Below, piece after piece: positions 340-32,567 of a stretch of 64,000 nucleotides of DNA. This stretch comes from Bugula neritina (taxonomy: Eukaryota > Animalia > Bryozoa). A model generated the notes under the pieces. That model saw only the letters and a list, made by a program, of their open reading frames with translations, made no database searches and had not been told where the DNA came from. The position numbers and the translations under genes are program-made. The stretch is taken from the NCBI GenBank assembly GCA_964035545.1, contig OZ037770.1, forward strand, positions 11,862,463 to 11,926,462. The letters run 5' to 3'. The stretch's first letter is position 1, and each line of letters starts with the position of its first letter.

Positions 340-1712
340 GACAAAGAGGATGGAGGGGCAATCAAGGAGTCCCGGGTCCAAAGGGAGAGGCAGGAGATAA
401 GGGCAAACCCAACACTGCCCCTGGTCCAGCAGGTCCAAGAGGAGACCTTGGACCAGCTGGTCCTATGGGCGGTCTTGGTGCTAAGGGGCCAAAGGGAAAT
501 GCCGGACCTCGTGGAAGAGTAGGTTTACAGAAATATTATTTGACTTTTACTGGTTTTAATTTTGAGAAAACTGAGCAATTATTACCTAATCATCATATAA
601 TTTAGGATTTCTTAATCTCGATACTAGCAATGTATTATGAGATAGTTTAACAAACTGAGTCAAGCACTGTGTTTGTAAATTGTTTTGTTTATATTTTATG
701 CTACTGCTTTTGTAGAGATACAGAGGAGCTAAAGGAGAACAGGGAGTTACTGGTGGAGTCGGACCACAAGGAGGTCCAGGAAGAAAAGGTGCATCACTCC
801 GAGGGCCTACTGGTAAGAAAGAAGTAACAATTTATTTAAAGTATTTTAACTTTCAGACAAATATTTCTTATGTTGTTTGCCATGTTTTCTTTCATCTTCT
901 TCACTGACAGGAAACTGCTTTTTTAAAATTACAAAAATAGAAGCTTCTTTTAACGTTTGTAGCAGAACATGAATTAGTAAAGAAACATTTTCCAGAACAA
1001 TTGTGTTGGTAGTTACGAATCTAGTTTCTTGAATATAGGTATGAAAGGTGAGATGGGAGTGCCAGGCGGTGTTGGTCCTAAAGGAGAAGTAGGACCATCT
1101 TACAGAGGTCCAGTTGGACCACCTGGACCAGCAGGCCCATGGGGACCAAGTCTGCCAGGAAAAATGGGTGAACGAGGATTAAGCTATCCTGGACCTAAAG
1201 GTAAACAAAACCAGTAGCATTACATAAACTTAATTTCCTGCTTCTACGATGCTATCATAGTGTATAAAACAACATATATTGTGAAATATTTTCTTTAAGG
1301 CCTTAAATGCTAACCTTATGGACAATTTATTTATTACTCGTCTATTTGTAGCGATCAAATTCCTAGTGGTAATATCAAATATTAAAACCTAGCAATGAAC
1401 CTTCAAAAGGGATTGTTTGGCTCTAATATATGAATAAAATTAGCGTAGCTTGTTGAGTAATTGAGATGACAACTCCAAATTAATTTTTAAAAATACTATA
1501 TTTAGTACATATCATAATATTTAGTGCAAACAATACCTGGAGCTTGATTTGTACTTTCGGCTTTGTAAAACACATTTAATTTCTATATCACAGGTCCTGC
1601 TGGTGCTCCTGGTCCACAGGGACCACGAGGACGTCCTGGAGCTACAGGTAAAAGCGGTTCCAGTTGGGGCGCACCTGCACCACAAGACTCTGGAGAGAAT
1701 CTCTACGGCTAA
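340..1712 (+). CDS. Interrupted Gly-X-Y collagen, chain A (3' part; 5' exons lie upstream of the window)
   Basis: GT-AG exons 340-518, 716-812, 1039-1200 and 1594-1712 join in frame: [18 protein letters not shown]...GPRGR|RYRGAKGEQ...[21 protein letters not shown]. Exon sizes 179/97/162 are identical to the paralog at 5779-9294. AATAAA at 1846-1851. Confidence 0.92.
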
Positions 1713-3463
1713 ATGTTAGTCTAAACACACCTACAAGGAAAACTTTATAGTCTTAAGACAGATGAGATGATGCTTACTGACTCCACACTACAGATAAAAA
1801 ATAACATTGAACAAACAAATTGTAAACCTAATCGATTTGACTATGAATAAATGTGGAGATCGATCAATTTTAACATGATGACTACTATTTGCGCCATAAC
1901 ATGCAGCATTTGCTGTTTGCATAACTATAGAGAGTATGATATAGTGGTAAAGTATTAGTCTAGCTTATTAGCTGTTTAGATGGTGCAAATTTATTGGCTT
2001 AGACAATTCTGTTTCTTGATTTTTTTCAAACTATTGATTGCCAAATTACAGCTTGATTAGTAAAGTGATTACTAGCTTGCAGTAAATATTCTTTGACATG
2101 TTGCATTCATTCTATTTCTTATAGAAGTAGATTTAAATAATTATAAAAACAACAAGGTATCTCAAAGCAGTGTTTAGTATATTGCAGCAGCAATAACTGT
2201 CCAAAAAAAAAAAATTACAATATAATAATAATTATTTTAAAATAATTTCAGTACATCATATATAAAGCTGTACAACATCATATTTTCTTCCTCTAGACAA
2301 TTGACGCTTCTTTCTGTACAGGTATGTGAAAAGTTTACTCATGTCTCTTACTAAATAGTTTGTACCATGCACTGTCTTGGTGATTTGCATTTTTATTCTC
2401 AATATTGAATACGTCTATGTTTAAAATTCATTTTTTTCCATATCTGTTATCTTACAGTAATTTGAGGTTAGATTAGTAATCAAATAAAACATTGGTAGGC
2501 AATCATTTCTGTTGCATAGAACTAATGTTTGTGAAATTTATTTTGCTACAGCATATCATAAAGAGGCGACTTAGCAAGGGGCAAGACTTTCAAGACAGAA
2601 CACAAGTAAAATACTGAAAGATTGTGCCACTGACACAGAGAGCTTCTGAGCGCAAACTATTGAAGCATAAAAGTGAGTTAATAAGTCTTGTACATCTATT
2701 TGACATAGCTCCATGAAAAGATAACTTCTTCACACTTATAGTAAAAAAGAAAACAACTTCAAAATACATGTCCTTATATACGTAGCTATTATAAAGATGA
2801 AAGCAAATTACTTTGAAACTCAGTTCAAATAGTTGCCCAACTAAGACCTTAAATTAATAGAAAAGAAATGAATTAATATCTTTGCTAAGTTAGTAATATT
2901 ATACATATAACACTACAAGATTCTTAATTATACAACATTTTTGAATATATTCATTTTTTTATCATAGATTTATTATCATATACAAAGGAGTTATTTTCTT
3001 TTGTCTTTATTCTATCATGGTGGATAATATTCTCACTTCTGACTCCATTATTATTATTATCATACTTATGGTTCTTTACACGCTAATCATTATTTTTTTA
3101 TTTTCAATAATTAACTAAGGTTGCCTCTAATGCATCATGATATATTTAGGATCAAGTATTTTGGATTTTTCCTCCAACAAGCAGTAATGAAAATACAACT
3201 CCAAAAATAGGCAAATTCAAGCAAAATCTTTTATAATCTCACACTTTTTGGTGTAACCAATTGTAGGTCTTGCTATAGATTAATGTAAAATTCACAACAA
3301 CTTTTGTCATTTTTATTGTTTCTCATAACTTTCGCTCTGGGTTGAATTTATACAGGGCCTGCTACTTAGCAATTTGTAGTGCCCCCCCCCCCCCCCATGT
3401 AATGTAGATTAAACTTTTTGTGAGCTCACTATTCAGTATTATTTTGCTTTCTTGATTTAGTCT

Positions 3464-5778: not shown

Positions 5779-8700
5779 TTAGTGCCAAATACTGGCTGCC
5801 TTTTCGCCCTTTGGTCCAGGGTATCCTGGTGGTCCCTTAGGTCCAGGGTGGCCAGCAGCACCTAAGAAAGCAATATAAATAGATATTAGTATTAAAAAAG
5901 GCATTAAAGTAAGGATTACAGAATATTAATATAGCTAGAAATATATTTCTTTAGGTTAAATGGTCATTTCAAAATAAGTTAATAGTATTATGTGGCATAT
6001 GCATCTTGCAATATATTAATCATTATGCTAACAGTAACATGCTGAGCATGCTTATATAATAAATATCATAAAATTTTACCTTTAGGTCCAGCATAGCTGC
6101 GACCACTGTCTCCCATTGGACCTTGGTGTCCCTCTCCTTGCATACCTGGTGGTCCAGCTGGTCCTGGACGTCCAGTGTATGAATCACCCTGCTCACCCTT
6201 AGGTCCGGCGTATCCAGGTGCACCTGGATGACCTCTCATTCCTGTAAGTAGAAAAGTAATTATTATAAACTGTTATCCAATCTTGGAAGTTATTAACTCT
6301 TTGATATTCAATGGTTAAAGACTACACACACTCAAATTATAGGAGTTATTTACTCTTTTGCATTTGTTAGTTGCAGACTGCAGGAACTTGTAACGCAAAA
6401 CAATTGTGTTGTTTTACTATTTGGTTGTTGAAAAAAACCCATTTTTGGCTTCCTATCAACACTTTTTGAAGATAGTAGTAGTTGTATACCTTTTGGTCCA
6501 TAGAGAGATGCACCCATTTTTCCTTTAGGTCCAGCATATCCGGGGGCACCATCAACACCCATCATTCCCTTTGCACCTCTGTATCTCTGAAAAACAAGGA
6601 AATAAACTAATCATCATAATAAAATTTGCATTTATAAACCAGGTTCTAAAATTGTGGCTTTCAAATGAACACATTAGATTAGTAAGGAGCACATACTCTG
6701 CCTCTTGGTCCCTTGTTTCCTTTAAGGCCTTGAGCACCAGGAGCACCATTAGGTCCAGGATATCCTGCATCTCCTATCATTCCTTTAGGACCAACACCAT
6801 ATCCTGGGATACCCACGTGACCCATTTCTCCTTTTGGTCCTCTATAACCTGGGCTACCGGGATGACCTCTCTCTCCTAAAAGTTGTTATAAACATTACTA
6901 AAGTTGAACCAGAGTTTTGAAACTAGTTGAAAACTTTTATACTTAGAAGTGTACTAAAATTAACATAATGTGGTTAGAACTATTTGTTCAGCTTTTTACC
7001 TTTAGCACCATATCCATTTGGTCCATCTAGTCCTGGAGCTCCAATCATTCCACGCTCTCCCTTTGGACCTCTGTAGTTTCTTCCTCTATCTCCCTTTGGC
7101 CCTTGAGCACCTGGTACTCCTGCTGGTCCCTTGACACCGGTGGCTCCACCATGTCCGATTTCACCTTTAGGTCCTGTGCAGAAGAAAAACTTGTGTTATA
7201 GGCCTACTGCTTTTCTGCTGACAATGCATTTACTACTTAAAAGAATAGTATATGTATTATGATAGTCAAATTCACCTTGTGGTCCAGGGAAACCATGTCC
7301 GCTGTGTCCCTTTGGTCCCTTGTATCCTGGTGGACCAACATCTCCTCTCTTTCCCTTGATGGAGTGTCCATTTCTTCCTCTGTATCCCATGTCTCCTTTG
7401 GGTCCCTTTGGTCCTCTGTGTGACAATCCTCTCATACCCTTAGCTCCAGGTACACCTGGTCTACCATCATGTCCTGGCTCACCTGGAGAATGTGAAAAGA
7501 GACTTTGAGAATGTCGCTGTAGCTAGTAAATAGAATGGAATAGAATGCCCTGCAATAAGTGATAAATAGTTTACCCTTTCTGCCGTAACCTCGGTCTCCT
7601 TGCATTCCCTTGGCTCCATTGTATCCTGGGATACCATCTGGTCCCTTCATACCCTTAGGTCCACGGTAGCTCTGTGAAAAAATGCATAAGATATGTTTTC
7701 TTTTATCAAAATTATCAATAGCATTGATATTATTGTTGGTCTATTAATTATTATCACATTTGGTGCTAGATACAATATTCATGAGAGTAAACATTACATT
7801 TCCATAAATCTTGAGTGCCCAAGACGGTCCAACCCAATTATAAAGTTTCTAATGTATGGTTATGATGTAATTAGCTAGTGATTTTATGCAATATTATATT
7901 GATGATGCCAACTGTAACTTGCATAAATTAAAATAAATTATAAACATACTCTTCCTCTATCTCCTTTAGGACCTTGTCTTCCTGGAACGCCATATGGTCC
8001 CTTGTCACCAGGTTGTCCCTTAGGTCCTCGGTATCCACGTGGGCCAGGGTAGTAGTTGGCCATTCCCTTCTCACCCTTGTAGCCATTAGCTCCAGGAAGA
8101 CCTAAATAGTTACAGCTTTGACATGTATGCAACAACAATTGTGGGTAAAATTATATATTCAGAAGTTGTCTACCCAAATAAATGATGTCCAGAATTGAGG
8201 AAGTTGTTGAAGGTAAAAAAGTTTGAAAGCTATGTCAGGCAAACTTAAGAATATGATAAACAAAAACAAGTTACGGCTGCCTTGTAGTAAAAACTGCTAA
8301 ATAAACAGGCTATCACAGATTTGACTAATGATTTTACCTGGGTGTCCAATTTCACCGCGCTCTCCCTTGGTGCCACGGTAGCTGCGACCTCTGAATCCTT
8401 TCTCTCCCATCATTCCTTTGGCACCATCCATGGGTTGAAGAGCGGCACCTTGGTCTCCCATACGTCCTGGTTGTCCTGGGGGTCCAATTGGACCTTTATA
8501 ACCTTGGTCTCCCATTGGTCCTTTGGGTCCTGGTGGACCTACAATACAAAAAAAAGTGTATTGAAATGTTTTGCTCTGTTGTGTGAGTAACTCAAGAAAC
8601 TGGGTTCAAAGGGATGGGTGGTAACTTACCTGCTGGTGGTGGGTGAGTGACACCGGGATAGCCTGGTGGTCCTGGGGGTCCAGGTGGGCCGGGTGGGCAT

Positions 8701-9294
8701 GGTGTTTTGCAATGGTGAGAATAAGCACTTCTTTTAGCTCTTGAAATGGTCTAATAATAGAAATATTAATATGTTTTCAAACTGAAAATAAAATTTTGGA
8801 TGAAACAGTAGTAAGAGTACACATAGTAGAAATTGGATGCTTAAAATAATATTGATGCTTATAAGTGTACTCACTGATTCAGGCTTTACATCTGGGAGCT
8901 TGTGAAGATCAACCAACTAAAAGTTATCATAAGCATTATGTTACAACTATGGTGGATAATTAATATGCTTAGGGTTGGCTAATTGATAATGAGTAATTAA
9001 CTGAACATGGAAATGACTAATATAAAAGAGTTCAACCCAGCAACTTTACAGCTTATTGTGTGTAGTATGACTTTTGGAAGCAAAACATAAAACATTATTA
9101 ATATTATGGTTATAGTTTTACTAAGACATTTTATTACAGGCTACTTAATATGTGTTGCAGCTCACCTCAGACTCTAGAAGATCAAGTTTGTTGAGGAGGT
9201 ACGTAGCAAATATGGCACCAGAGATGACGAGGGTGGTGAATATTGTGCATGAGATTAATATAGACACGGTGGACAGTTTCTTCTCGTGAGCCAT
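5779..9294 (-). CDS. Type II transmembrane (MACIT-like / cuticle-collagen-like) interrupted collagen, chain B, 547 aa
   Basis: 12 GT-AG coding exons (minus): 9294-9166, 8916-8875, 8750-8630, 8538-8338, 8101-7950, 7671-7575, 7482-7276, 7173-7000, 6875-6697, 6586-6490, 6241-6080, 5861-5779, totalling 1644 nt in frame. Translation [80 protein letters not shown]...[15 protein letters not shown] on minus at 5637-5642. Confidence 0.93.
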
Positions 9295-9615: not shown

Positions 9616-11457
9616 ACATAAATGAAATGTCAAGTGAAAATCCATTTATCACTTGGCGAAAATTCCTGTTATATGTGTCTAATTATACATTTGATATGAT
9701 ATGTGGGGATATTTTGCAAAGTGTTTTGGTAATAAAATCTGCCGGTATGTGACCTGAAACAGACAAGGAAAGAAACGTTGAAAGAGACAGTATAATTATG
9801 CATGGGGAGCCAACTCAGCATAAACTCAAGATTTCTGTGACTCCGTGTCAATGAAGTTAAATGAGTTTTGAATTGTTATATACCTTTAAGATAGAAAAAT
9901 CATTATTCAAGACGACACTGTACCATGGTAACAGACTTATTTCTGTGTGAATAATTTTGTGATCCTAAAGCTAATTCGAATTTTCAAGTGCTTGAGCTAC
10001 TTATTGGGGATTTTATATGAATTTAATTGGAATGATTTTTTCTTATCGAAACATCTATAAGTATGTGGTGCCATAGATTTTGTAGCAAATTGCTTTATTT
10101 ACTGCACTTTTTGTTTTAAATTTTGTTTTTTTCACTGCCTGGTACAGTTTGCTACTAAAGTATGTATTGAAATAAAACTCATTCACAATGTATGTCATTT
10201 TATTTTAATAACAATAAATAACTCTTCATAATGACCATATAGACAGTGTCGATGTCAAATTCTAAAAATTGATATTAGTGATAAGTGTAACATTCCATAT
10301 TTTAAAACCATATAGTAGTCACATTATAGATTTTAAAGGTATCCTGGAATGCAAAATATCTTTACTATGATCAAAGTTACTTGCTGTTTATGTTGCATGA
10401 AAGTAGTTAAACTGCAAATCTGTCAGTATACGAAACCTAACATACTACTATATTACTCCATAACTACATCACTACATAACTGCATTAACATAATGCTATA
10501 ATACTATATTGTCATGTAACTATTTTACTACAATATTACAACACATTATACAATCACCATATTACTCAGAAATTCTAGAAGAGCGTCACTGCAGCACTAG
10601 GATGTAATGTAGTTTACAGTAAAAATAAAATATGTAAAGTTTTTACTTACAAACTAAACAGCACACATGAGTATGCATTAAAGAAATAAAAGTCAACACG
10701 TATAAGGCCAGATATAAAATCTGTTTAAAGCAACATACAAGCTTATACAACAGGCTTGTTAACTGTTCACTTTAATTTTTTACTTCATAATTCAGTAATA
10801 ACGCAGCTTTATCTGAAAGTTGAGTTAAAAACATGCCGTTCTCCCCATTTAACTATAGCAAATAGCTAAAATAATAACTTTGTCTTTATAAGTAAAGTTT
10901 TCAGTTGCGATAGTTATGTGCCTTTAAGGTTTAGTAAAGCTACAAAAATAAAGCTAAGAAGGAACAGGAATTCAAAGTTGCACGTGCTTTAAACTTTATT
11001 TGGCAATTGCTTCAGCAACTTTCTCCACTCTATAGAGAGGAGAAAGTTGCTGAAGCAATTGCTTTTTGTCTTGAATATCAACTGCTGTTCTATTTTTGGC
11101 AAGAATTGCAAAAAAATTTGCATTTCTACTGTTTTCCAGCTTTTTAGATTGCACAAACTGAAACAAATCAGCAAGTCTAAAATTATCAGAACTGAAACAG
11201 TTTCCACTGATACAACATCGTCTGCCAAACTCAATTGGCAAGAAAACTTTTGAGTTTTTGCCTGGCGTAGCTTCTAAATATAACAATGAAACAATAAAGG
11301 GTGGTGAACATGCACAGCTAGTTTCAAGTTTGGCTTTTTCAAAAAAAAGGTTACGAAATACAAAGATTTCAAATAATATATGTAACCCAAGTTAGCTAAT
11401 TCATGTTGCAAATGCACACATCTATTTGATGCAGATGACATATGCAAGTTATAAAAC

Positions 11458-11532
11458 TTTTGCCCCAACTGGGATTTGAACCCAAGACCTTGGGCTTGCT
11501 GGCAGGCACCTACCATTACACAACAGGGAACA
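11458..11532 (-). mobile_element. tRNA-like fragment within a probable interspersed repeat
   Basis: Reverse complement TGTTGTGTAATGGTAGG...CTTGGGTTCAAATCCCAGTTGGGGC has a B box and T-arm (GGGTTCAAATCCC) but a degenerate A box. Confidence 0.4.
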
Positions 11533-14500
11533 CCAGGTAAACTCATTGGCTGTCTGTTTATTCTAGTCTAATAAAATTCTTATTGGAAGTATAGCAAAAC
11601 AGTAAAAGTTAGATTTTACAGAATTGATTTTATTAGCACACTGTTTTAACACTTTGATAAATGGAATGCTCTTGAAAAGCATAATAATCATTAGCTTAAA
11701 TACTAAATTGAAACATTCTCTTTTTCAAAATTGTCACCTCGTATGCATGTCCCTTTGTATGTATATTTGATCTGCGTGTACAACAACTTTAATCTATAAC
11801 TATAGTACTATAAAGCAATTAATATTATATTCAGCTCTGAGCTTAACTATTTTTCACTAAAAGGCTTGATAAGAATAAAAATAAAAATTGTCAATTTTAA
11901 AATTATGGACATTTAGAATTGATTTATTTCTATTGGTTTTTTTTTCATGAAGATTTACAATACAAATTTCAGACATGTCTTGATTATTGGGGTTGTCTCA
12001 CACGACTTAATAATTTTTTCTCATTTCTTGACATTCTAAAAGTGGCTTTAAAATACTTGGCATGTAGCTGCAGTAACAACTAAAGTACTATAATATGCTG
12101 AGTATACTTAAACTAAATGTTCGTTATTTAAAAAAAGCTGCGAATTGCAACTTCAAGGCGTGTCTCAAATTAACCTTATGATATTGTGAAATGATTTCAA
12201 CTGGTCAAAATAGCAATAGAAATTTTATTGCTTTATAAATATGATTTATTAAAGAAGATTAGTTTAATCTATTATAATGGTTTTATACAAAATAATATTA
12301 CAGGATCCTGTTTGATCTAATCTTAGTGCATGCATTCATGCGCCTTTAAATTATAATTTTGTTTGATTAGGTGTCGGTGAGCATTGAAAGGTTGCATACT
12401 ATTTTAGCTAGATGCTAACTGAATGGCAATTTTCGCCGCTGGTTTTGATAAGATTTGCACGTTAGTACTATTTAATGATACAAACTAAACACACCAAGAT
12501 GAAAAGACTTTCATAAAGCAAGAATTTCAGTCAATGCTAAAACTATGCAAATGCCAATCAAGTTATTTTCAGGCGATTTTTTAAATAAAAGAGTTATTTA
12601 TGAGATAACCATATGTCATCAGTCAAATCACAATTGTACTATAGTGTATATTTCTTTGTGTATTTTTGGAGGCTACATTTTAAAGTGGTTTAATTTAACT
12701 TAATATACTTTAATCATTAGTTTACTTCATCAATATTTGTTTAGCCTCTGTTTTGCTGCAAGATTGAGCGCCCTGACCACATGTAGGCAAGTTCCAACTG
12801 GATTAAGTAGCACTGAGTCTATTTTTGTTGGTACTTCATGCAGATGCTGCTAAATATGCAATGAAACTTATACTGAAGCATATGCATTATTGTGCGTGCC
12901 GTATTATGAACATTTGATAGGTGCTAACAAAAGCTGTTGCAAAACAAAATGGGAGCTTTTGTATAGGGGCAACTTGGGTACACAATTAATGTACAGCAGA
13001 AAAAAAGCGGAAATGCTAAAAATTTTAATGTAACAAAGTTAAAATGTAATAAAGAAAATGTATTGGCAATTTTTCTTTGAAGAAAATCATTAGGTGACCT
13101 GCCAAAGATAAAACTCTTGATATAATATATAGTCCATGGATTTAATAACTTCACTTCTAAAGTTTAAAGTTAAACGAAAAGCTATAATGCAGCTGGATTA
13201 AAGCGAATTAGACAGACATTAGTTTTCCACTTGACAGAAAGCTTCCTCGGTGTCACAAATTTAGTCTTAAAATAGTTGTGCATCTAAAGGATTAGCAAAC
13301 ATGTATAATTTTAAACTAATTTTAAGCAAGTATTAACTAAGGAAATCGGTTAAAAATGTTGATTACTATTTCTTGGTTGTGGCTCTGTGAGTCAAGACTG
13401 GCTGAGGGCATTGAGGTGCAAGTTGGTGCCAGGGTGTACTTTGGCAAGTTCAACAAGGTTTATATTTATCTAAGATGTTTTTTGTTTCGGTAGTAGAAAT
13501 AATCGTATAAGACGACGTAACCTCTTGAGATGCACATCTGGCAACCAAGTTTGATTCTGAGGAGAGTATGTCGCAACCTCTTTACTTCCAAATCGGGAAA
13601 CCTAGCTTGTTTGAAATTTAATGATAAAATATGAAAAAGTTTATAAACATTATATAACAGCTTTAAGGTAAATTAACAAAAGTACTTTGCTAGCCCTTTT
13701 TATTCATATCTTTTGAAAGACAGAGTCGTACCTTATGCTATAATCCTTAGCAAGTTAGGTGCTACATACTGGACAGGCACCTAAAGATCTTGCTTTTATA
13801 TTTTGCAATAAACTCTATATTTATTGCACACGTACTTCACGTCAACACAACCAAGTCAATACCAAATCTGTTGATGGTGAAACAGATGGCAACAGAGTTT
13901 TAAATTTCTTACCACACTTCCTTTTACGTTTTGTAAAAAGCTATGATTAAGTAAATGATCAACTGAAATAAATAGCCATGTGTAGGTAGATTGTTTAGAC
14001 AGCTTACAAATTACTTTAATTCTGTCTATACACTCTTAACAACTCTTATTTCATTGCAGACTGAAAACCGGCTAAAGATTTACCTTTTAAGTGTATGGTA
14101 CTCCAAGATACAAACTGAAGCATGCAACATTAAAATATGATTAACATTTTCTGCATTTGTAACTTATGTTTCATAGAGGCTATACAGGTGCTAGCCAACA
14201 GATATGCACGATGCATAAACTTAGCATATAGTAAAACAAGGAAATGATTTCTCTATATTGCGGACAGTAAGTGGGTGGTTAATTATTGGAAAAGATAGTT
14301 CAGTAGCAAATGTGATAAAAAACCTTTGAAGGTTGTAATGTTTTTTCTTTTAATAGTTTTTCTTCTCAACTTGCTTGTGCTTTCTTGAAACTCTTACTGT
14401 ATTTATAACAAAACAAAACATGGTGTGACAGAAGACATTTGATATAGCCAGCAGTAAAATGCTCAATAGATTAAATTTATGGTGATTTTTCAATCTATAC

Positions 14501-19778: not shown

Positions 19779-19895
19779 TTTACTTACTTACTCATAGATG
19801 GAGTCCTGTAACAGGGCTTCATCTCATATCAGCTCACAACATCTACTCTCTTTGACACTATTGACTTCCACACTTTTCTATCTTGTGCCAGATCT
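19779..19895 (-). mobile_element. 5'-truncated non-LTR retrotransposon (RTE-like) 3' end
   Basis: Minus strand encodes DLAQDRKVWKSIVSKRVDVVS* (the A-x-DR-xx-W motif typical of RTE-clade ORF C-termini), followed by a short UTR and a (TAAG)n tail. Confidence 0.55.
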
Positions 19896-20381
19896 AAAAA
19901 TAATTGATCAAATGCATGTTAGCAAATATTTTTTTAGGTCTTTTTGACAGAATTAACCAAGAATGTTTTTCTGAACCCACTATAGGATGCTCTAGACTAA
20001 GAATGTGTCCATTATTGACCAGTAACCTTGAACAATCTGCAGTCAATAGCTAAAGTTTTCTTGCATATGGCGACTGCTAGCTGTAATCGCTAGACAAGTG
20101 GATTATAGGCATCTATATTGACTGTCTCCATATTGTCGTACATCAGTTACAGTTAATAGCTCTTGCTTATATAATTATGCTTGTAGATAAATACTTCCAT
20201 TTATAAGGAAGCATAGATTTTCATTTATGCTTTATGATCTCTGGTAGACTTGTGTAGAAGTTACAACTTAAATGTAATTTATGATTTGGATGGAATGCTT
20301 TATCATACTTAACATCTGCTTTATCGATTTTCATTGATGACGATAGTTATGATTAACATTAAACAGTTAGTAAATACCTAA

Positions 20382-20580
20382 GGGAACAGCAGTGGTCTAG
20401 TAGGTAGAAAGTTGACCTAAAGCCAAATTCATGTGTTAAAACCCTAGCAAATACCAGTGGTGATGTTAGGAAGACCATCCAGTCATAATTGCCCCTGTGC
20501 CCCCTCTGAATAAGTCCTTAGCTTGCTTTAAAAACCCTTTCCATCACTGGTTTTTTACAGAGATAGTGACTATAAACTTA
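20382..20580 (+). mobile_element. tRNA-derived SINE, family 1 (diverged copy)
   Basis: Colinear with the copies at 36277-36483 and 45111-45324: GTGGTCTAG A box, core GGTGATGTTAGGAAGACCATCCAGTCATAATTGC, 3' end ACAGAGATAGTGACTATAAAC. Confidence 0.8.
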
Positions 20581-21049
20581 AGGGAGTTAGTAAATAGCTA
20601 AAAACTAAGAGATTGAGTCAAATAAAGACACTCTCTTTACAATGCTGGTGGATTTCACTCAGTAATTTGTAGGTGTGTTGATCTGCACTGGATATAAAAG
20701 GTCTTATCGTCAACTAGCAGCAAAACAGCTGCAGACAATGTGAGCATTGCATTGGAGAAATTAAAGAGGTTTAATTGCAAATCCACTCTTAAGCTTTTAA
20801 TCCTTCATAACTTCACAGCTTCCATAAGATTATAGTTCAATTACTGAATGATTTATAGTATATCAACTATAATTATTATGGTCTTTAATATGCCAACTTT
20901 TTTTTTCTACAAAACAAAATTCAGTAATGCTACTGAGTTTTATTCATATAGAGTTTTTGTGAGTTTGCTGCTGTTATCCCTGTTATCCCTAAAAGTGTTT
21001 ATAAAGCATAAAGTAGGCTAAGGGCTTTTTTCTAAAATGAAGCAAAAGC

Positions 21050-21132
21050 AATTCTGTGTTTGCATGGTGTTGAGATTCAAACCACTGACATTATGTGTAC
21101 TGGGCCAGCATTCTAACCGCTGCACCACTGCT
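21050..21132 (-). mobile_element. tRNA-like repeat head (probable second SINE-like family)
   Basis: Reverse complement GCAGTGGTGCAGCGGTTAGAATGCTGG...GTGGTTTGAATCTC has A and B boxes with degenerate stems. Confidence 0.5.
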
Positions 21133-23130
21133 AAACATAGTCACAATTAAATATTAGTTCATACAAAAATGTACCCAATTTCCAAGGTAACCGACAATTG
21201 CTTCACAATATTCACTAGTTAAAACTTTGATATGCAGTTGTGAGGATGCTACAAAAGTGGGTGAATAATAAAGTAAAATGCAACATGGAATTCATCTACA
21301 AATTTTATTGTAGGCATGGATACAAAATGCATTGGCCATGGTTGCATAAAGTAGCCTGTTTATAGGGTCTTTTTCTCATATTATGTTTTGTCAAATGGTT
21401 TGTAGAAATAATTTATTATATTAATGTTGTTAGATCACATGGAGGCTCTTTATGTTCCCAGATAAAGTTCTGAGCAGTTTGTATATAGTATATATAGTTT
21501 TCATCTCTACATCAATCTGTTGCTTCTATGTACCTTATTGGTTACATAGGAGGTATAAATGTTCCTTTGCTTCCATTTCCAGTTCTTTTTAACTCTTTTT
21601 GACAGTTAATGGGCACTATATCAGATTTTAAAATAACTGCAAAAACTTCTAACACTTAACTATATATATATATTATAGGAAACTATATTTTTGGTTGCTT
21701 TTATTGTATGTGGTTTAAAGTGACAATTACAGTTAAAAAATAAATTTATGGATCATGGCAGTTATTGAATTTATCACCAGAAATATAAATAACTTTAACT
21801 TAATTACTATAAATAATAATGACAGTTCGACTTTATAGTTCACACCGTTTCAGTTTTGCTGCTTTGATAATTGCTTTGAAGTGCAAAACAAAACATAAAC
21901 AATCATCGGGCTTAATTATTGCAAATATCACTTCCCTTCTTTGAATAATATTTGAACTTTTATCAAAAATATAACAGCTAAGCTTGTGTTTTCATAGTTG
22001 AAAAGAAATAGTGAGCTGGGAGATCTAGCTGCTACAGCCATGACATAACTTAAAGATTAAGAGCTACAATTTAGCATTAACGAGGTCATGAGCAGTCTGA
22101 AGCTATTTTCAGAATATCACATTGGTTTGAGGCAGGCGAATGTAGAAACAGATTTTATGATCACTGCCAAAAGTCTTGCATTAAACAATTACGATATACT
22201 TAAATTTAGCAGAATAAACGGAAACATCTACAACTTTTGAAAGCTTGCTCGAAATGGTTCAGGCAAATGAAGCAATAATTATGTAACCACCTCTTGTACT
22301 TGCAGCATTAAATAATAAAACACTTTTAAAGCTTAACACATTTCAGAACAATTATTAATTCAAGTGACGTTTTCAATCATTACTAGACTATATATGAAAT
22401 AGACTTAAGCACTGATTATTTTCAAGTACTTTCACAGGAACTAAGTGTCAAAAGCAACATACAGACATAAACTAATACATAATTATATGTACAACATTTT
22501 AAAGCTAATATCACCAATAATGTACTGTAAATTATAAATGCAATTATGTATGTGTGTAGCTAAGTTCATCAATTTTAATGAGCAGTATTCTCAAATTAGG
22601 CGAAAAAAAAAAATAAAAAATATCATTTCTTTGGTGTATATATGAATAAAAACAATGCCCTTAAAATAACAATTAACCTTGCTATATATAAGGTAATGGG
22701 TGGGTGTTTTATTAGTTGTGGCCAACTTATATGAGTTCCACAAACATGCCAAACTAGGCCAGGTTATTGTTAAGCATGATTTGTGCATTCACATCCAAAA
22801 GTGACTTTGCATTAATTTTTTGTCATTTGCAAAACAAGGAAAATCCGTGCAGTTTGCGTGATTCAAACGATGCTATGCTTATGTCCTGAGTTGTTAATAA
22901 TTCTTAGAATTCTAAAATTAAGTTATTTTTAAACTATCTTGTTCTCATATTTTAGTATAGGTGGCACAAAACAGTTCTGATAACTACTTTTTCACCTGCT
23001 GGTTCAACAATAACTAAGTAAGTAAGCGTAGGGCCACACGGCGCGTGACATGCAAGAAATCACATTTAGCCCAAAAAATGGACTTCGTGAGCAGGATTTT
23101 CATATGTCTAACGTGCTGAGCCATGTTATA

Positions 23131-23137
23131 AATATAC

Positions 23138-23218
<81 letters not shown>

Positions 23219-23242
23219 TATACATATATATACATATATATA
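23131..23242. repeat. (TA)n microsatellite
   Basis: Direct inspection. Confidence 0.95.
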
Positions 23243-25884
23243 CTGATCTCAAATAAAAGCATTAGAAATATTAATGGTTATTAAAAACTGCTATTCAAAA
23301 ATATATCAACATTTCAAAAATGCATACTGTCTAATAAACAGAGGTGAATAACCTCCATGGTGTCTGTCTCTTAATCCTTCTACGCAGAAAAATGATGGAG
23401 TCATCCAATATGAAGCTACAGTCAACTTTAACCTTTCAAAAATGTCATGGCCTGATGATTAGAGCTCTTGCTGTGCATGGTTATACCAGAGATTAGACTT
23501 AATTCCAAACCAACCATTTTAAAGTTACTAGAAGTTTAACAAAAGCACTTGAAGCAATTACTCCTGGACTACTCCCTAGCAATTTTAAGCTGTTGAGGTA
23601 GAATTTATATACTTCATAAATAGAGAAGGTTAGAGCAAGTTTTGAACTTTAATAAAGGTTGCAGTACAGACAGAAAAGTGCTTTATTTGGTAATAACCTA
23701 AAGGAATAACTATTGCAGCTAATACATATACTACTGTAATAACAGTTAAGGTTTCCTGCTCAGAAGGAATAAAAAATAATTATAAAATTCCATATAAATC
23801 ATTAACATGGAAAACTTTGAAAAACAGATCTACTTTTTTAATTCATTAAGTTAGCAGTTAACAGAAAGCAAAATTTTTCGACACCTTGTATTAGCTTTTT
23901 TATTTCCTTATAGAAACAATTTGGATGAAGGTGCAATTTACGTAAGAAATTTCACGACTTTTTGCCTATAGTTATTATAATTTTGACAAAAGTTGTTGAC
24001 CTTATTGAACGTCAACAACTTAAAATCTTGAACAAACTACCTAGCCAGCTATTGAATCATTTGCACAGGTTCAGGAGTTGACGTAAATGTGGCAGTGGTG
24101 GAAGTACTACACTCTGTACTGCCTCCCTTGTGGCTCATATAATTGAATGAGAGACAAACAGATTTTCACTCTTGATTACATAGCATAGAGAGATAGGTTG
24201 AAGTTTTTGTGCATAACAATACTTCATCTACATAAATTATGATAATGTGTTGTCAGGGTATCATTGCTGTATAATAAAGAGCAATAGGTTAGTAGGTTGA
24301 ACAGATTTTATCTATACCCAACTGGTAGCATTCGTACCATGCACTCAAATAACGCATATATCTTTACCTAGGTGATTCTTATCATTCAAACGTTATTGAA
24401 TATGTAATTCTAACCGCCAGAAATTTCCTGTTTGTCATCTGTTAATAAAGAAATGGCCTACTTTGAATTGTAGCTGGATAATCGTGAATTATGTGTACAA
24501 CTTTTATATCTATTATCCGGTTGCACAGAATGACTGCAAAACCTTATATTTGATCAACTTAATTACTCCTCTTAAGTATTAATGTTGAGTTAATTATATT
24601 TAGTGACTCTGACACCAGATTATAGCATTTAGAGTGTGGGGGCAGGTTAACCACTGGCTTATAGCATTGCCATTTGTTTCTGTTTGTACATAATACAAGG
24701 TAACCCTGTTACAATGTCGATATGTAAAAGCTCTACAGTATGCTGTGTGACTAAATATTTCCTATGAAGATCAGTCATGGATTCTTTATGATAAGCGTGC
24801 AAGTATAAATATTTTACTATTGAGAAAACTTGATATATGTTTGAAGCCTTCAGTGAAACCTATAACTCCAATCCCGGATCTATAATTACTTATCCCGAGT
24901 AGATGAGTGAACTCTACGTAAAATGACATCAAATTTATGCAACACAAAGTTGGAATATTTTATTAAAAACTATTAAAATAAAATTTAGACCAGGATAACA
25001 TTTGATTTATTCAATGGTAGCTGATATAATTTTTATTGTATTATTTTAGGCTTCTTTGTTATATATTTTAAAAAATAGCAGCCATTTTCTTTTCAGAAAT
25101 AAAATCTTGATGTATGAGTTATCCAAAGTTTTAAGAAAGATGTAGTCAGTTGGAACAGATTTATTTGATTTATGACTTTAGGTGTTTTCTCATAATCATA
25201 ACTTTAAATTATCATACTGATTTATATAGGCAAGGGAATTTATTGTCATAAATTCGTGACGGGAGAAGTAATGTATAGATGTATAAGAGATAAACAGATC
25301 TTCATTTGCCTATCCTATCCTCCCTTCTAAAGGGACTAGTACATTGACATTTGGTTAGTTCCGCTTTTAAACAATTTCTGGAAGTACTTAAGTATAGCTG
25401 CTAGATTTTCTTCAATTCTTTCAAAACACATAATTTAAACACCGGCAGTGATAATTAATATTTCGAAGAAAACTGATTGAACAACCATCTATCTTTAGTC
25501 AAACCTATCAGCTCTCCTAATCTTGAAGTGATAAAAAGATTAAACTGAATAAAAGAGGGATTAACATTAAAATCCTAAATCTTTTAAAATATGTATTGAT
25601 GTCAAAAAAGTTGAGCCCACTCTTGGTTTATGTTATTTACTAGTTTTTTAACTTGTGTCACGTTTACCTTTAGACCTGCTTTCAAATAACAAGAACCTTT
25701 CATGCAACAACATGGCTATAGTATTAGTAAAGAGATTAATGATGATGTGAATAGAGAGAGTTGTGTGCTTTTATAAAACTTAGGGCATCAAAACAAGTGT
25801 ATCTAAATTTGTATTCTATCTGCCATGTGCATTAGAAACTGGTGTTCCTCTAATAAACTAAAGCAAACAGCTGTTGAAGTCTTA

Positions 25885-26185
25885 CCGCCTATTCACACTT
25901 ACCGTATCGGACGCCGTAACAGCAAATATCAGCCATTTTTAATGTGTCCACGCTGAAGTTTTCAAAGTCTGCTATTAGGTACAATCTATGACACTTCATT
26001 GAATAATTATATCCAATGAATTAACGCAAAAGTTTTTCTGTCTAATAGGAGTCTGCCGCAACTTATTTGAATCAAGCAGTGTTTGATCTTACCGTACCGC
26101 AACACCTTACAAGAAGCTCAGACATTTGTAAAAATGGCTGGTATTTGCTGTTACGGCGTACGGTACGGTAAGTCTAAATAGGGGG
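25885..26185. mobile_element. MITE, PIF/Harbinger (Tourist)-like, ~301 bp
   Basis: ~60-bp imperfect terminal inverted repeats (left CCGCCTATTCACACTTACCGTATCGGACGCCGTAACAGCAAATATCAGCCATTTTTA; right reverse complement CCCCCTATTTAGACTTACCGTACCGTACGCCGTAACAGCAAATACCAGCCATTTTTA), flanked by TTA at 25882-25884 and 26186-26188. No coding capacity. Confidence 0.85.
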
Positions 26186-29045
26186 TTAAACTAGCATTTA
26201 CTTGAAAAAAGGTCCCCAGTTAATGAGGACATGTTCTGTAGAGATTTATAGATGCTCTGTATTGAGAAATCAAATGGAAAAGATGTCTGCACAAAATCAC
26301 CACGCAGCTCTCACCATATAAAAAAGTATTAAAGTTACTAGCTTTTTTTCTAAGGGTGTTGATATTCACCTCAGAAACACCTCTCCAAAATATTTATCAG
26401 TTAGTTGCATATTCTTAGTGGTTTTTATTGCAACGGTGCCATAAATTAGCTATGGAAAGGGTCTAATTTTACCGAGCTGATACCAAGTGGCTATGCTATA
26501 AATAATAGTTTCACTAAAACTAAGATACCCTCGAGCAAATAGCCTACATTTGAATTTTTCTACAATAATATGGTGAAACTTCTTGTAGAAATTTGGCAAC
26601 ATGTAGTCCCACATTTAGAGCAAAAGCCGTTGTCAAATGGTACAACTAGTTATTTTTATCTATGATGAAAAATTTTGCTCAATAACTATTTTTAGATAAT
26701 TGCCTCATTAAAAATTATCTTCCAATAAAAAAGACCGTGGCTAAATCGTAGCTATGGTGGTAATATTTTAAACTAAATTGATATCTATAACACATTTTAA
26801 TAATTTTTCTGTGCTCACACAAATGATTCTTTTTTATTGACTTCTTTTTCACTTTATGGCATAAATTACATATAGAACCAGTGAAAAGTTCAACTTCATC
26901 ACCTCTTTGATTGTGAAAAGTTTTCAATTACTTTTATAGCGCAGAGTTAAGGAATAGAAGCTTCTAAATATGACGCCTTAAAACATTGTTAAATAAAAAA
27001 TTAACCAGGTCAGGTTGACACAGTTTAACATAAACATATAACAGAAGGCTATACAAAGAGAATAGGACTACAAGCACTATAATCGCTAATGAACTGTGAG
27101 ATGCTCATTATACGTTCCTAGACATTCTTAAACTAATTATTTCCGCATTGGTATAAACCTATACATATCTTGGCTTTTCGTTTATTTTCCCTCTTCCTCT
27201 TTTCATGTGTTGTGATAACATTCTAAGGTCATCTAAAGGTTAAGATATGCAAGGTCTTTCTTCAACTGACAGCCATTGAACGAAGCCAAAAGTTGACCAT
27301 AATTAATTGAGTTCTCCTACAAACCAATTTATTTGCCAAACATAATGAGTTCTTTGAGAGTCTTAATAATAATAATCCCTCAATTAACTAAAACATTTAT
27401 GTAAATTACACCCTACTAATAGGGATAGTTAGCCTTAATGTTTAACCATGTTCATTAGAGTTTATTTTTAAGCCTGCATATTTTCAAGGCAAATGATTGA
27501 GTGATGAGGCAAAGAAACAGTTGTTATAGTGTCTAGCAGTAGTTCAAATTTAAAACAAAAACCTTATTATACCAAAAAAAAGTTATTAGAAGTAATTTTA
27601 TCTCAAGTGATTATACATCGATAATTGATAACCAGACAAGTGATAACAATTTTCAACCAGACAACCACTCTACAAAGCTCCTTTTAATGAACTACAATTT
27701 TTTTGCAATGTTCTTTTACAAAACAAAACATCTTTTTTACCCACATATTTCAACAAGTTATGGATTTGTTTTTATAGGAAAATATCATTTTTTGCATATA
27801 ATAACTGATTACTGCAAACTGGCAATGGTTAAAGTTTTTTATAACATGTTGAACAAAATAAAAATTTCCACTATACCAAAAATGTGATATCATTTCAATA
27901 ATATGTTAATCATTAATTTGCGTTGTCAGGAAGTTTTGTGTGCGTTACAGTAAATCATGCCAGCGAAAATCCTTTCTGACGTTCATTGGCTCACGACCTG
28001 AAAACAGGTAATTTCCAGCAGCATTCTTCACGGTCTAACCTGTCAGGACTTTTTGAAGCGGATTCATTATATTCATGTGCAAGCCGGCAAAATTTTTGAC
28101 TTTGAGTGATTTGTTGTTTGAAAAATTGCATCTCACCTCTCCATTTTAGTTTTGAAAGCTTGGTATTTCAGTGTCACACCTAAATTACAGCTCTTCTAAC
28201 AAAAACAAAAGAGACTTGAAGTTATAAGAACAGGTGACAATTGCTAAAAATCATTAATTACACCTTCAGAAAGTAAGTAATGCTTTTGTCTTGTGGCAAG
28301 TTCAAACTTATCTGATCTTTACCTACTAGTCTAATTTACTGACGGACTATATAACAACTATAGTCAACACTCATCAATAGTATGTATGCATTAATAATCG
28401 CCGTGGCTGCAGTAGTTGTCATCTCTCTGTAATAAAATCAAGCAGTTGTTTTAAAATGCAATGAGTTCTTGATTTGGTTTGGTTATGTATAAATAGTCAA
28501 AATAGCTTTCAGACTATACATTTCATACATACAACATTTCTTCATCTATTAGCAAATTTTTGAATAAAAAGAAGCTTTTTACATTATAATAAGGCCAATT
28601 TCGTTACTGCAATACACAATTTAATTAGTGAAACAAAAAATATAGTGAATCAGCTTGAATTGTACAAGAATCCCATAACTGCCAGTCAGTAGCTTAAAAA
28701 CTGCCTAAAAACAGTATAATAAAAATAAGAGGAAAAACTTTGATTGCAAACAGGGTGGAAAGTTTAAAAAAAATAAATTAGGTCACCCTAATTATTTTAT
28801 AGCAAATTGTTTTGGTTAAAAAAACAATTATTACATCATTGGAGAATAAATTTACACCAAAGCAAGCTATTTAATCATTACTGAAAATTGTGCAACAAGG
28901 GATGGCATTTCCATTACTTCTGAAATATCATCAACATAATTATTTATCCGCAGAGAAGATAAAGGTGTTCACATAGCAACATAAATAAGGCCATCAATCA
29001 TATCCTAGTCAAGTTGTCATTTTGTCACTAATCAAAGTTTTTAAA

Positions 29046-29222
29046 TGATTGATTGAACCTCGAAGGCGGAGCAAAAGCATTTCCTCACACTCCACCCATC
29101 TGAAACCAAAAAAGGCGGAGCTTTACAGGTAACGGCAGAATTTAATGTGCACAAGGTGTATAAAAACTCGAACCTTTGAATCTCAAATCAGTTTCAACTC
29201 ACAGCTCATCCCAACACACAAA
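29046..29222 (+). promoter_or_regulatory. Core promoter and non-coding first exon of collagen chain C
   Basis: TGATTGAT (29046-29053), two AAGGCGGAGC GC boxes (29062-29072, 29112-29122), TATAAAA (29159-29165), initiator TCAGTT (29188-29193, A at +31 from TATA), and donor gtaagt at 29223. The acceptor lies directly before ATG 29454. Confidence 0.75.
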
Positions 29223-29453: not shown

Positions 29454-32400
29454 ATGAAGGGTGAAGTAGAAGTACAAAACAACAGGAATAGCCTGTGGTC
29501 TATTGGAATCGCAGTATTTGTGTTCCTTACCACATTTATCTGTGCAGTTGTCTTCTCTATCTACATCCTCAACAGAATTGATGCAGTTGAGAAAGAGGTG
29601 ATTACGGCATTTATGTTCTAGTCTTAATTTCTTAACCATTTAAAATATTCTAAAAAACATATTTTGAATTTATTTAAAGCAGCTTTTACTAGACTTTATA
29701 ACTGAAATTTTATAGTCACCTTACAAAATATTGCATAAAATATTTCATTTAAGTAGTAGATAATATAACAGCGTGTCTGTTTTAGATTGTAACCGTAAAA
29801 ATTGCAAAAGGAATAACTGGATCAGAACTTATTGAGGTAAGCATCTATATTATTATATAATGTACCATATAAATAATATAAGCTCTTACACATTTTTTAA
29901 TATAACTTGAAAACTACCTAATGTACTTAAAACTCACTTAGATATTGTAATACTTTAATGCGTGGGTAATAATTTATTGTAATATGAGAGTGATTCATTT
30001 AAAATAAAACTTGTCTATTCATTTTTATAATTATAGCATTTATACTTTAATTTACTAGACCAACACCAGAGTGAAAAGAAGCGCATCCGGATGGGGCTGT
30101 CAGACCACTTGCCCAGTCGGTCCCCCTGGACCAGCTGGCCCAAGAGGACCACAAGGGCCAAGTGCTAATGCCTGGGTTGGCAAACCAATCCCAGGTAAAT
30201 ACAAACCTAATATATTAAATTAACCAACTTTAAAATGCTGAAAGCAATAACTATTTTAAAATCTTTTTTTATAATCCTTACAGTATATTTTTGATTTGAA
30301 TTTTTTATGCTGCTGCCAATTTTAAATATTTTAAATATTTTCTGCAATAATACTAAAATATGCATGATTTTTTAAAAACACAATTAAATACGAATTTTTT
30401 GCCATAATTTTAAACTACAGATATGCTTCATTTAGAATGTTGGGGCAGAGAAATCAACTTAGGTTCTCATGTCAGCATATAGATAAATGTTGTAATAATT
30501 AATGGGAATGTACTCGATGTGAATTAATAATATATTGAAATACAACAAACGCATGCCAATTCAATTTGCAAAGAATAAATTATTTTTTGTGGTCAAAATA
30601 ATATGATAAAATCACTTCCCACATTTCCCATTGTTTGCTAGATTAATGTGATTAAGGGCATGGCATCTAATTAAAGAGTGTCTCTCACTAAATGTGAACT
30701 TTGTTTTAATAGGACCAGTAGGACCCAAGGGAGACAGAGGACTGCCAGGTCCACATGGACCAGTTGGTGTTATGGGCCAAAAGGGTCAACGTGGAGCTGA
30801 TGGCATGGGAGCACCTGGCCGACCCGGTGATAAGGGAGACCGTGGTCTACCCGGAACACCAGGATATGGTAGTGTTGGAGAGAAGGGAGACAAAGGACCA
30901 CGAGGATACTCAGGTAAAATAAGTCTTTTGATAGAATTTAAATAATGCCTATTAACATATTGCAGTGATATAAACAGTGTTACATTTTGCTAAAATAATT
31001 TCTTTATGGTGCATACTTAGTGAAGGGTTCTTTGGTATCATTTCAGGTCGTGATGGAGTTCCAGGAGCCAAGGGAGATAGAGGTGCACCATCTAAGATTC
31101 CCGGTGCACCAGGAGGTGAAGGACCAAAGGGTGACCGTGGTCCTGCTGGAAAACCTGGCTACCCAGGAGCCAAAGGTGAGCCAGGCACACCTGGTTATGG
31201 AGGCCCTGGAGCTAAGGGAGATGCCGGAAAACCTGGAGTTCCAGGCCGTGATGGTCCCAAAGGAGATAGAGGTCCTGCTCATATTGGAGCAAAGGGTCAC
31301 CCTGGTAAAGATGGCATTCCCGGATACCCAGGAGCTAAAGGTGAGCCAGGATATGGTGGACCTGGACCAAAGGGAGACCGTGGTGCTCCAGGATATGCTG
31401 GTGCCCCAGGTGTTGGCGTAAAGGGAGATATTGGCCCCGCTGGTGCTCCTGGACCTAAGGGAGATAGAGGTGGTTCATACAGAGGTCCTCCAGGACCAGC
31501 TGGAGAGAAGGGAGACAGAGGATACAATGGTGCACCCGGAATGAAGGGACCAGCTGGATACCCAGGACCAAAGGGAGAGCCAGGCAAGGATGGATATGGA
31601 GCACCAGGTGCTAAGGGAGATAAGGGACCACGTGGATATCCAGGTAAAGCAGGAGTTGGACTACCCGGTGCCAAGGGAGACCGCGGATACAATGGACTGC
31701 CAGGTGGACCAGGACCTAAGGGAGATAGAGGAGCACCAGGACATGGAAGCAATGTTCCAGGACCCAAGGGTGACAGAGGATACCCAGGCCCAATTGGCAA
31801 ACCAGGATACCCCGGAGCTAAGGGAGAACCAGGCGATGCTGGAGTTCCAGGCTATGTGAGTAGTATTTAAAATCAGTAGTTTCTGAAGCTATTTTAATGT
31901 TTCATTACTCAGCTTGTAAATATGATGATGTTACAATGATATGAATATGTGATGTGATGATAAATTCCCTTTTTAGGGAGCACCAGGAGAGAAGGGAGAA
32001 CCAGGAAAGCCAGGATACAGAGGACCACCTGGACCAGCAGGAGAACCAGGTGTAGGACTCCCAGGAGCTAAGGGAGATCGCGGATATCCAGGAAGAACTG
32101 GCCCACAAGGACCCAAGGGACATCCAGGATATGGAGCACCAGGTATGCATCTAAAGTACCACTACATTTTCCAAGTTGAACAATTCTATTGAAAATTGAA
32201 AGCTATATATTCTATGTGAAAATAATAACAATGTTTATGTGTCTAAACTTGTAGGCCCACAAGGACCCCCAGGACCAAAGGGACCAGCAGGATACGGTGC
32301 CAAAGGAGAGCCAGGTGTACCAGGATATGGCCGACCTGGAGCTAAAGGTTAGTTAAATACTCTCACAACTTTTCATCAACATCATGTTCCATAGGAAGAC

Positions 32401-32567
32401 ATAAAACAATTACTTATTTAGTGCACATAAGTATCTCTGTAAACCTTTTGTTATGTACGTCTCTCTAACACGGGCTTTGATTTTCAGGTCATCCCGGACC
32501 ACCAGGACCACCAGGCCACCCCGGCCCAGCTGGAGAGCCAGGAGCATCTAGCTCATGGAGCGGTTAA
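29454..32567 (+). CDS. Type II transmembrane (MACIT-like / cuticle-collagen-like) interrupted collagen, chain C, 559 aa
   Basis: 8 GT-AG exons: 29454-29597, 29786-29836, 30059-30194, 30713-30913, 31047-31855, 31977-32142, 32255-32347, 32488-32567, totalling 1680 nt in frame. Translation [88 protein letters not shown]...[14 protein letters not shown] at 32822-32827. Confidence 0.94.

Follow-up and report, generated by a model that had tools for sequence, protein, structure and literature searches.

Three collagen genes in the Bugula neritina window

A stretch of 64,000 nucleotides (nt) of Bugula neritina DNA, hereafter the window (G000:C6:11862463-11926462), contains a cluster of three collagen genes, and the present study addresses the structure of the encoded chains A, B and C and the possibility that they assemble with each other. 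The window is AT-rich eukaryotic DNA from a 216-Mb genome. The three genes were located by a six-frame Gly-X-Y scan, and all of their exon junctions are GT-AG in the splice models. In the same scan, nothing resembling a collagen frame was found in the remaining 31 kb of the window. The window opens within the gene of chain A, whose upstream exons, including the transmembrane (TM) exon, were recovered from the 20 kb that precede it. The genes lie at the following positions.

340-518, 716-812, 1039-1200 and 1594-1712, plus strand: last four exons of chain A, stop codon included (GT-AG model)
G000:C6:11858143-11862369, plus strand: seven upstream exons of chain A, left of the window
G000:C6:11858143-11858268, plus strand: TM exon of chain A, 4.3 kb left of the window edge
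G000:C6:11859665-11859821, plus strand: exon of chain A that encodes RVKR and CPASCP
9294..5779, minus strand: chain B gene, 11 exons, 533 amino acids (aa), GT-AG junctions with polypyrimidine tracts
29454..32567, plus strand: chain C gene, 7 exons, 542 aa

Chain A consists of 558 aa encoded by exons of 126, 157, 201, 152, 100, 207, 177, 179, 97, 162 and 119 nt, and its intron positions are those of chain B, the exons of which are 129, 121, 201, 152, 97, 207, 174, 179, 97, 162 and 83 nt long. Chain C is encoded by exons of 144, 136, 201, 809, 166, 93 and 80 nt. The A and B genes are arranged tail-to-tail with a gap of 4.1 kb, and the B and C genes head-to-head with a gap of 20.2 kb.

Shared architecture of the chains

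Each chain is built from the same parts in the same order: an N-terminal tail, a hydrophobic helix, a juxtamembrane motif, an R-x-K-R site, a variable linker, a C-x3-C-P motif, a GPP-rich block, a break, the main collagen helix and a C-terminal tail. A hydropathy scan identified a single hydrophobic stretch of 24-28 residues per chain, which follows an N-terminal tail of 5-20 residues with Lys or Arg, and found no second hydrophobic segment in the chains. A type II membrane topology is predicted for chains A, B and C. The juxtamembrane segment of all chains can be read as a two-heptad pattern with hydrophobic residues at motif positions 2, 6, 9 and 13. All chains contain R-x-K/A-R, and the R-x-K-R site is located 4-6 residues past the juxtamembrane motif. 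Further downstream, C-x3-C-P is followed by a four-triplet GPP-rich starter block and then by a break of 8-13 residues before the main helix. The RxKR site, the putative C-x3-C-P knot and the starter block were seen in all seven chains examined. The transmembrane architecture with a candidate furin site, as proposed in the initial annotation, is supported at the sequence level by a predicted type II anchor and by R-x-K-R directly behind the juxtamembrane motif in every chain and homologue. The N-terminal elements of B and C are positioned as follows.

9276-9193, minus strand: B membrane helix (hydropathy scan)
9201-9166, minus strand: B juxtamembrane heptad motif, continuous with the membrane helix
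8741-8730, minus strand: B candidate proprotein-convertase site RAKR (sequence motif)
8711-8655, minus strand: B C-x3-C-P knot and starter block
29493-29570, plus strand: C TM helix
29562-29597, plus strand: C juxtamembrane motif
30068-30079, plus strand: C RVKR site
30098-30154, plus strand: C knot and starter block

The C-terminal end is short in every chain, with a tail of 5-15 residues after the last triplet that contains one Trp. This Trp is located 1-4 residues from the C-terminus in six of the seven full-length chains and ~13 residues from it in chain A. A C-terminal domain is absent in every chain and in every homologue found, and no chain has a cysteine downstream of the N-terminal knot. 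In a Pfam scan of the exon translations, the collagen repeat PF01391 was the sole match (E=2e-30). The main helices of A, B and C carry strongly positive net charges (+44, +43 and +25). Each Bugula chain has Tyr in 7-11 of its 16-17 breaks, the homologues have it in 9-12 of 15-16, and breaks 2, 4, 9, 12, 14 and 16 contain Tyr in all six full-length chains compared.

Register of the main helices

The initial annotation had drawn attention to B and C as chains with equal main helices and very different X and Y residues, and this observation is confirmed. Measured from the start of exon 3 to the position before the last triplet, the main helix is 441 residues long in both chains, at a non-glycine identity of 0.21. 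The splice models reproduce the matching exon sums exactly: 201 nt in both chains, 152+97+207+174+179=809 nt in B for the single 809-nt exon of C, and 97+162=166+93=259 nt. B and C also share one series of glycine phases (0, 2, 1, 2, 1, 0, 2, 1, 0, 2, 1, 2, 1, 0, 2, 1, 0).

Between 16 and 18 interruptions were counted per chain. The 16 interruptions of B and C each lie at the same position or one triplet apart, as had been noted earlier. Breaks 1-8 start at helix residues 30, 50, 79, 116, 145/142 (the two chains one triplet apart), 168, 188 and 211/208, and breaks 9-16 start at residues 249, 272/269, 298, 335, 361, 387, 404 and 415. Most break units are five residues long, mostly G-x-G-x-x in C (G-Y/V-G-x-x) and mostly G-x-x-x-x in B (G-x-x-Y/x-x), and each chain additionally contains two seven-residue units. 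Break 7, which is discussed below, is located as follows.

7355..7369, minus strand: break 7 of B (GHSIK), helix residue 188
31409..31423, plus strand: break 7 of C (GVGVK), helix residue 188

Chain A had been placed in the same register on the basis of its visible 3' part, and its recovered 5' part supports this placement in pattern and not in exact length. The break series of A matches that of B, yet the exon sum that corresponds to 809 nt in B is 815 nt in A. The helix of A comprises 446+3 residues as a result of two single-residue insertions and one extra final triplet, and is not exactly commensurate with those of B and C. The insertions are located around helix residues 133-148 and at a new break, GPASLEK, near residue 232.

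Homologues in other organisms

Homologues were found by a back-translated scan of metagenome contigs with single exons as queries. Exhaustive and word-indexed protein searches with the 270-aa exon of C returned only generic long collagens or unrelated protein, as collagen composition swamps both methods. A protein-language-model search (ESM Atlas) with the large exon of C (31046-31855, plus strand) placed fragment clusters of CO4A1/CO4A2 nearest, at a score of 0.94 with few shared features, which is a weak match, though one that agrees with the numerous short interruptions.

One homologous locus belongs to a second organism (contig L006, extended to 18.9 kb as L079; GC content 46%) and contains three genes, X, C' and Y. 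X is of the B type, and its exons of 129, 403, 249, 207, 174, 179, 97 and 245 nt give the B sums with some introns lost. C' is of the C type, with exons of 144, 340, 657+152=809 and 339 nt and the same sums as C. X and C' are arranged head-to-head, 4.9 kb apart. The third gene is positioned as follows.

L079:13134-15957, minus strand: gene Y, whose membrane exon is of the B type and which also encodes RNKR and the knot CGRPCP

Y is derived from the B type and lies tail-to-tail with C'. Its helix is acidic, with a net charge of -23, and its reading frame stops at break 11 (GYPPY, then a stop codon) in two independent assemblies. Y may encode an acidic chain of reduced length, or it may be a pseudogene of recent origin.

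C-type genes were also found elsewhere. In a further organism, the C-type gene (L023, L024, L072 and L074, one scaffold of which is named BRYA16-1) lacks break 7; no collagen gene that might encode its B-type partner was found in the 2.2 kb upstream of the C-type TM exon on the longest contig, L072. In the C-type chain of a fourth organism, break 8 has moved. A partial C-type gene (L008 and L009) and two more C-type membrane exons, seen as small open reading frames (ORFs), complete the set. The C-type TM/coil exon is nearly invariant in five organisms, and the cytosolic tails vary.

Family size and relationships of the chains

The Bugula family consists of three genes genome-wide. Whole-genome matches to the B membrane exon, C exon 2 and B exon 6 correspond to A, B and C only, the matches that rank below them are generic collagen, and the TM exon of chain A is the sole close relative of the B TM exon in the genome. 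The many paralogs sharing the register through recent duplication, which the initial annotation had named as a finding that would speak against co-assembly, were not found in this genome with these exons.

How did the third chain arise? Non-glycine identity is 0.355 between A and B and 0.287 between B and X. Chain A thus resembles B more closely than X does and carries two extra residues, which points to a later duplication of the B type as its source and not to a third chain present from the start. A and B nevertheless go back to an old duplication, as synonymous divergence (dS) between them is saturated everywhere. Their nonsynonymous divergence (dN) is 0.09 in the TM segment plus coil, 0.02 in the knot plus starter block and 0.42-0.59 in the helix. 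The TM/juxtamembrane segment of B is 86% identical to that of A and identical to that of X (L006) at 20 of 36 positions, and B-type and C-type TM/coil segments are identical at 14 of 36. By the dN values and the near-invariant C-type TM/coil exon, the N-terminal module is the most constrained part of the protein, as expected for a chain-association and nucleation device. The two chain types, B-type and C-type, are regarded as ancient in this family.

Promoter elements of the cluster

The B and C genes are preceded by a similar composite of short sequence elements, arranged as follows.

9615-9586, minus strand: B promoter, TGATTGAT, 11 nt, AAGGCGGAGCT; TATA box at 9561-9551
29046-29072, plus strand: C promoter, TGATTGAT, 9 nt, AAGGCGGAGC; second, exact AAGGCGGAGCT at 29112-29122; TATA box at 29158-29167

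AAGGCGGAGCT is present in sense orientation 947, 302 and 342 nt upstream of the ATG of A, B and C, respectively, and a TATA box follows it 5-45 nt downstream at all three genes. The composite TGATTGAT-N9-11-AAGGCGGAGC, which specifies 18 bases, has exactly two sites in 216 Mb, those of B and C. Because the composite module is found only at these two genes, shared regulation of B and C is likely.

The 11-mer AAGGCGGAGCT was also considered as a general promoter motif. Its exact sequence occurs 81 times in the genome, and this candidate was rejected, given that ~40% of 20 sampled copies are located in a dispersed repeat and some are coding. The repeat is at least 110 bp long and contains AAGGCGGAGCT at G000:C1:621092-621236 and at least seven other sites (the repeat sites are L057, L058, L060, L063, L065, L067, L068 and L069). 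At 621 kb of C1, two AAGGCGGAGCT matches lie 134 bp apart on opposite strands; the two loci overlap and show identical context, and they may represent one repeat copy and a nearby second match rather than two inverted copies. The AAGGCGGAGCT-bearing repeat is possibly transposon-derived and inflates the genome-wide count of the motif. At L052 (G000:C3:14245432-14248242, minus strand), AAGGCGGAGCT is followed by CCAAT and, 52 nt further, by a TATA box, a promoter-like arrangement as at the collagen genes.

The ~19 kb between the B and C promoters (9620-29040) contain no ORF above 100 aa and no collagen-like frame. This spacer may hold regulatory DNA or repeats; its counterpart in L006 is just 4.9 kb long.

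Possible co-assembly of B-type and C-type chains

The initial annotation proposed that A, B and C co-assemble into one trimer of three register-matched chains. The B-type/C-type part of this proposal draws indirect support from the conserved head-to-head gene pair, the identical exon sums, a concerted shift of break 7 and the unique promoter module. The part that concerns chain A found no support, as A is two residues out of register and appears to be a later B-type duplicate, and the second organism has a truncated, acidic chain of another kind as its third gene. The sequences therefore do not support an A/B/C trimer that is obligatory. That B-type and C-type chains build mixed trimers is the reading developed here, and we consider it plausible, with a chance slightly below even.

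B-type and C-type helices are exactly equal in length in two organisms at ~20% non-glycine identity, and both organisms retain the type-specific one-triplet offsets at breaks 5, 8 and 10. Furthermore, break 7 has shifted in both chain types. In A (GASLR), B (GHSIK) and C (GVGVK) it lies at residue 188, and in X (GYALF), C' (GIVVP) and Y (GMVT...) at residue 185, with four triplets instead of five after break 6 in these three chains. The break 7 units are all clear-cut G-x-x-x-x units located inside single exons. This break is the sole one that differs between B and X, and likewise between C and C'. Two independent changes, one in each type, would coincide in site and direction with a probability of ~1/32. 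With respect to co-assembly, the concerted shift is suggestive only.

Could the common register simply be a relic of gene duplication? A, B and C might be ordinary diverged paralogues that are expressed in different tissues or stages, with a register maintained by purifying selection against non-triplet indels and with promoter motifs left over from duplication. Non-triplet indels are deleterious in any collagen helix, and breaks tend to stay after duplication. Chain A is already two residues off, C-type orthologues differ at breaks 7 and 8, and the two organisms have no conserved third gene, all of which fits such a history. However, triplet indels would be free under this explanation, yet B-type and C-type lengths are equal in two organisms, and the same break has moved in both types in one lineage. 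The 18-base composite module has also survived in B and C, despite a synonymous saturation that is seen even in the younger A/B pair. We regard diverged paralogues without a common assembly as improbable.

Mixed trimers were additionally evaluated by the distribution of charges. Complementarity between acidic and basic chains was rejected, as A, B and C are all strongly basic. Simple scoring of axial and lateral charge pairs across 27 trimer registers did not separate heterotrimers from homotrimers. In-register axial Lys/Arg(Y)-Asp/Glu(X) pairs were compared for conservation between the two organisms: 5 of 13 are conserved within the B type and 17 of 22 within the C type, and the pairs formed by B-type with C-type chains are conserved in 11 of 19 and 12 of 16 cases. 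These counts lend weak support to mixing because the C-type chain is simply better conserved.

Several observations weigh against mixed trimers. Full-length chains are all basic (net +14 to +43), which leaves no acid/base complementarity. C-type chains contain numerous conserved K-G-D/E motifs suited to self-pairing (the 17 of 22 above), give the best-scoring homotrimer of the three chains and look self-sufficient. Separate homotrimers could just as well be enforced by the TM/coil modules, which differ between the two types. Helix length is not strictly fixed, and breaks drift, as illustrated by the absent break 7 and the moved break 8 in other C-type chains. The covariation at break 7 amounts to a single event seen in two organisms. 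The promoter elements that B and C have in common may go back to the ancestral gene and would at most indicate shared regulation rather than co-assembly.

Moreover, the equal lengths, the common register, the break 7 shift, the association module, the gene adjacency and the promoter module would follow equally well if B-type, C-type and also A chains formed homotrimers in the same cells and these homotrimers were packed side by side in register in one lattice. Such lateral packing would accommodate the self-pairing motifs of C-type chains, the type-specific TM/coil modules could sort the chains, and the one-triplet offsets at breaks 5, 8 and 10 would be flawless inside homotrimers. It is less easily reconciled with the B-type chains, which have few conserved self pairs and many with C-type chains, or with the near-identical association modules of A and B, which would make mixing hardly avoidable if these chains are co-expressed. 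Length matching through packing has its precedent in fibrillar collagens, the types of which have helices of the same length when they form mixed fibrils; short interrupted collagens are not known to be under such a constraint. We consider co-packed homotrimers a real possibility, at appreciably less than an even chance.

For mixed B-type/C-type trimers, we propose the following assembly mechanism. Each chain would be inserted into the membrane in type II orientation, so that the short N-terminal tail faces the cytosol. Its membrane helix would lead into the two-heptad juxtamembrane coil, and three chains would be gathered at the membrane. The C-x3-C disulfide knot would lock the GPP-rich starter block, at which folding would be nucleated and from which it would presumably proceed in the N-to-C direction. 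The product would be a very basic rod of ~126 nm in which the register slips by one residue at 16 fixed sites, a large share of which contain tyrosine. A furin-type convertase would cut the segment that joins the coil to the knot, at R-x-K-R, and free the knotted rod. The released rod may enter the pericellular or cuticular matrix and become cross-linked through its tyrosines. B-type and C-type chains, encoded head-to-head with a shared promoter module, would be the most likely partners in such trimers, and chain A could stand in for B in some of them.

Other features of the window

Outside the collagen genes, the window contains a 487-aa Ser/Pro-rich open frame without a Pfam match (52910-54373, plus strand), which probably represents one large exon coding for disordered protein. 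Long TA-rich microsatellites are present at 23014-23262, 33779-33900 and 60739-61137 and read as (IY)n in several frames. An Rfam scan of the window gave no match, and a Pfam scan of its other ORFs gave nothing convincing.

Comparison with known collagens and significance

The initial annotation did not recognise this collagen as a described type, and comparison by published criteria and domains agrees: the family falls outside the MACITs, the nematode cuticle collagens and type IV collagen. A literature search found no description of a clustered B-type/C-type collagen family.

The MACITs, which comprise collagens XIII, XXIII and XXV together with C. elegans COL-99, are defined by type II topology, by interruptions in the ectodomain and by a two-cysteine motif that is conserved at the C-terminus and ends in W(H/N/Q)K (PMC4678570). 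The A/B/C family resembles them in its predicted type II orientation with a short cytosolic tail, in its interrupted collagenous ectodomain (PF01391, 16-18 interruptions) and in a possible short heptad coil beside the membrane with a candidate furin-type site. The C-type chain of L006 has RTAR, the reported furin motif of human collagen XXIII (PMC4678570). In addition, the Trp near the C-terminus is reminiscent of the W(H/N/Q)K end. In contrast, the conserved C-terminal two-cysteine motif, judged from the published criterion, is absent in the A/B/C family. Its ectodomain is one long helix with 16 one-residue slips, whereas MACITs have 3-7 COL domains split by NC domains, and its C-x3-C knot and GPP starter block lie past the predicted cleavage site. 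Two or three chain types are clustered, as opposed to one MACIT gene per invertebrate genome. MACITs are homotrimeric, as in collagen XIII (PMC4678570).

Nematode cuticle collagens are processed by a convertase and consist of a membrane helix, R-x-x-R, cysteines, a short Gly-X-Y block and, past a brief break, a main Gly-X-Y block that has small interruptions (PMC10538796). The A/B/C family shares this order of parts and, as predicted, the release by a convertase. It is also tyrosine-rich and possibly tyrosine cross-linked. Cross-linking through tyrosine is a feature of nematode cuticle collagens, which are ~300 aa long overall and in which the main Gly-X-Y block is flanked at either end by a cysteine cluster. 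Unlike them, the A/B/C family has a helix approximately three times longer (~147 triplets; 441 aa) in proteins of 533-560 aa, has no C-terminal cysteine cluster and only the N-terminal C-x3-C, and is encoded by three genes rather than >150. Among six TM exons, one gave a match to Col_cuticle_N (PF01484), which at 13.9 bits (E=0.06) lies below the cut-off of 23.5, and the other five had no match.

Type IV collagen resembles the A/B/C family in that two old chain types are encoded head-to-head and many short interruptions lie at matching sites and differ in length or kind between chains. However, the A/B/C family has no 7S or NC1 (C4) domains, with the stop codon 5-15 residues past the last triplet, and has a membrane-anchored precursor. 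The B/C pair is 20 kb apart (4.9 kb in L006) and does not share a compact bidirectional promoter. Type IV collagen is a heterotrimer, whereas mixed trimers in the A/B/C family are a proposal.

We rate the A/B/C family as a new form of the furin-shed transmembrane kind of collagen, as predicted from its chains. To our knowledge, the known transmembrane collagens, including the MACITs and collagen XVII, are treated as homotrimers, and bryozoan matrix proteins are almost unstudied. Partner-chain choice in collagens is understood mainly for C-terminal domains. It is possible, though we put it somewhat below an even chance, that the B-type/C-type pair represents the first obligate heterotrimeric transmembrane collagen. 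Such a pair would be encoded head-to-head like COL4A1/COL4A2, chosen at the membrane by the TM-plus-coil module, zipped from N to C, locked by the knot and shed by furin as a basic, Tyr-studded rod that cross-links into the bryozoan apical or pericellular matrix. It would constitute an independent invention of the paired-gene interrupted heterotrimer of basement-membrane collagen.

If this proposal is true, the family would provide a compact natural system for chain selection by transmembrane and juxtamembrane helices, for the way in which G-x-G and G-x-x-x-x-G breaks fit opposite each other and for the way in which a shed collagen builds a lophotrochozoan matrix. MACITs were not found in Annelida or Mollusca (PMC4678570), and given that MACIT-like collagens are reported missing in these groups, the A/B/C family would fill a gap.

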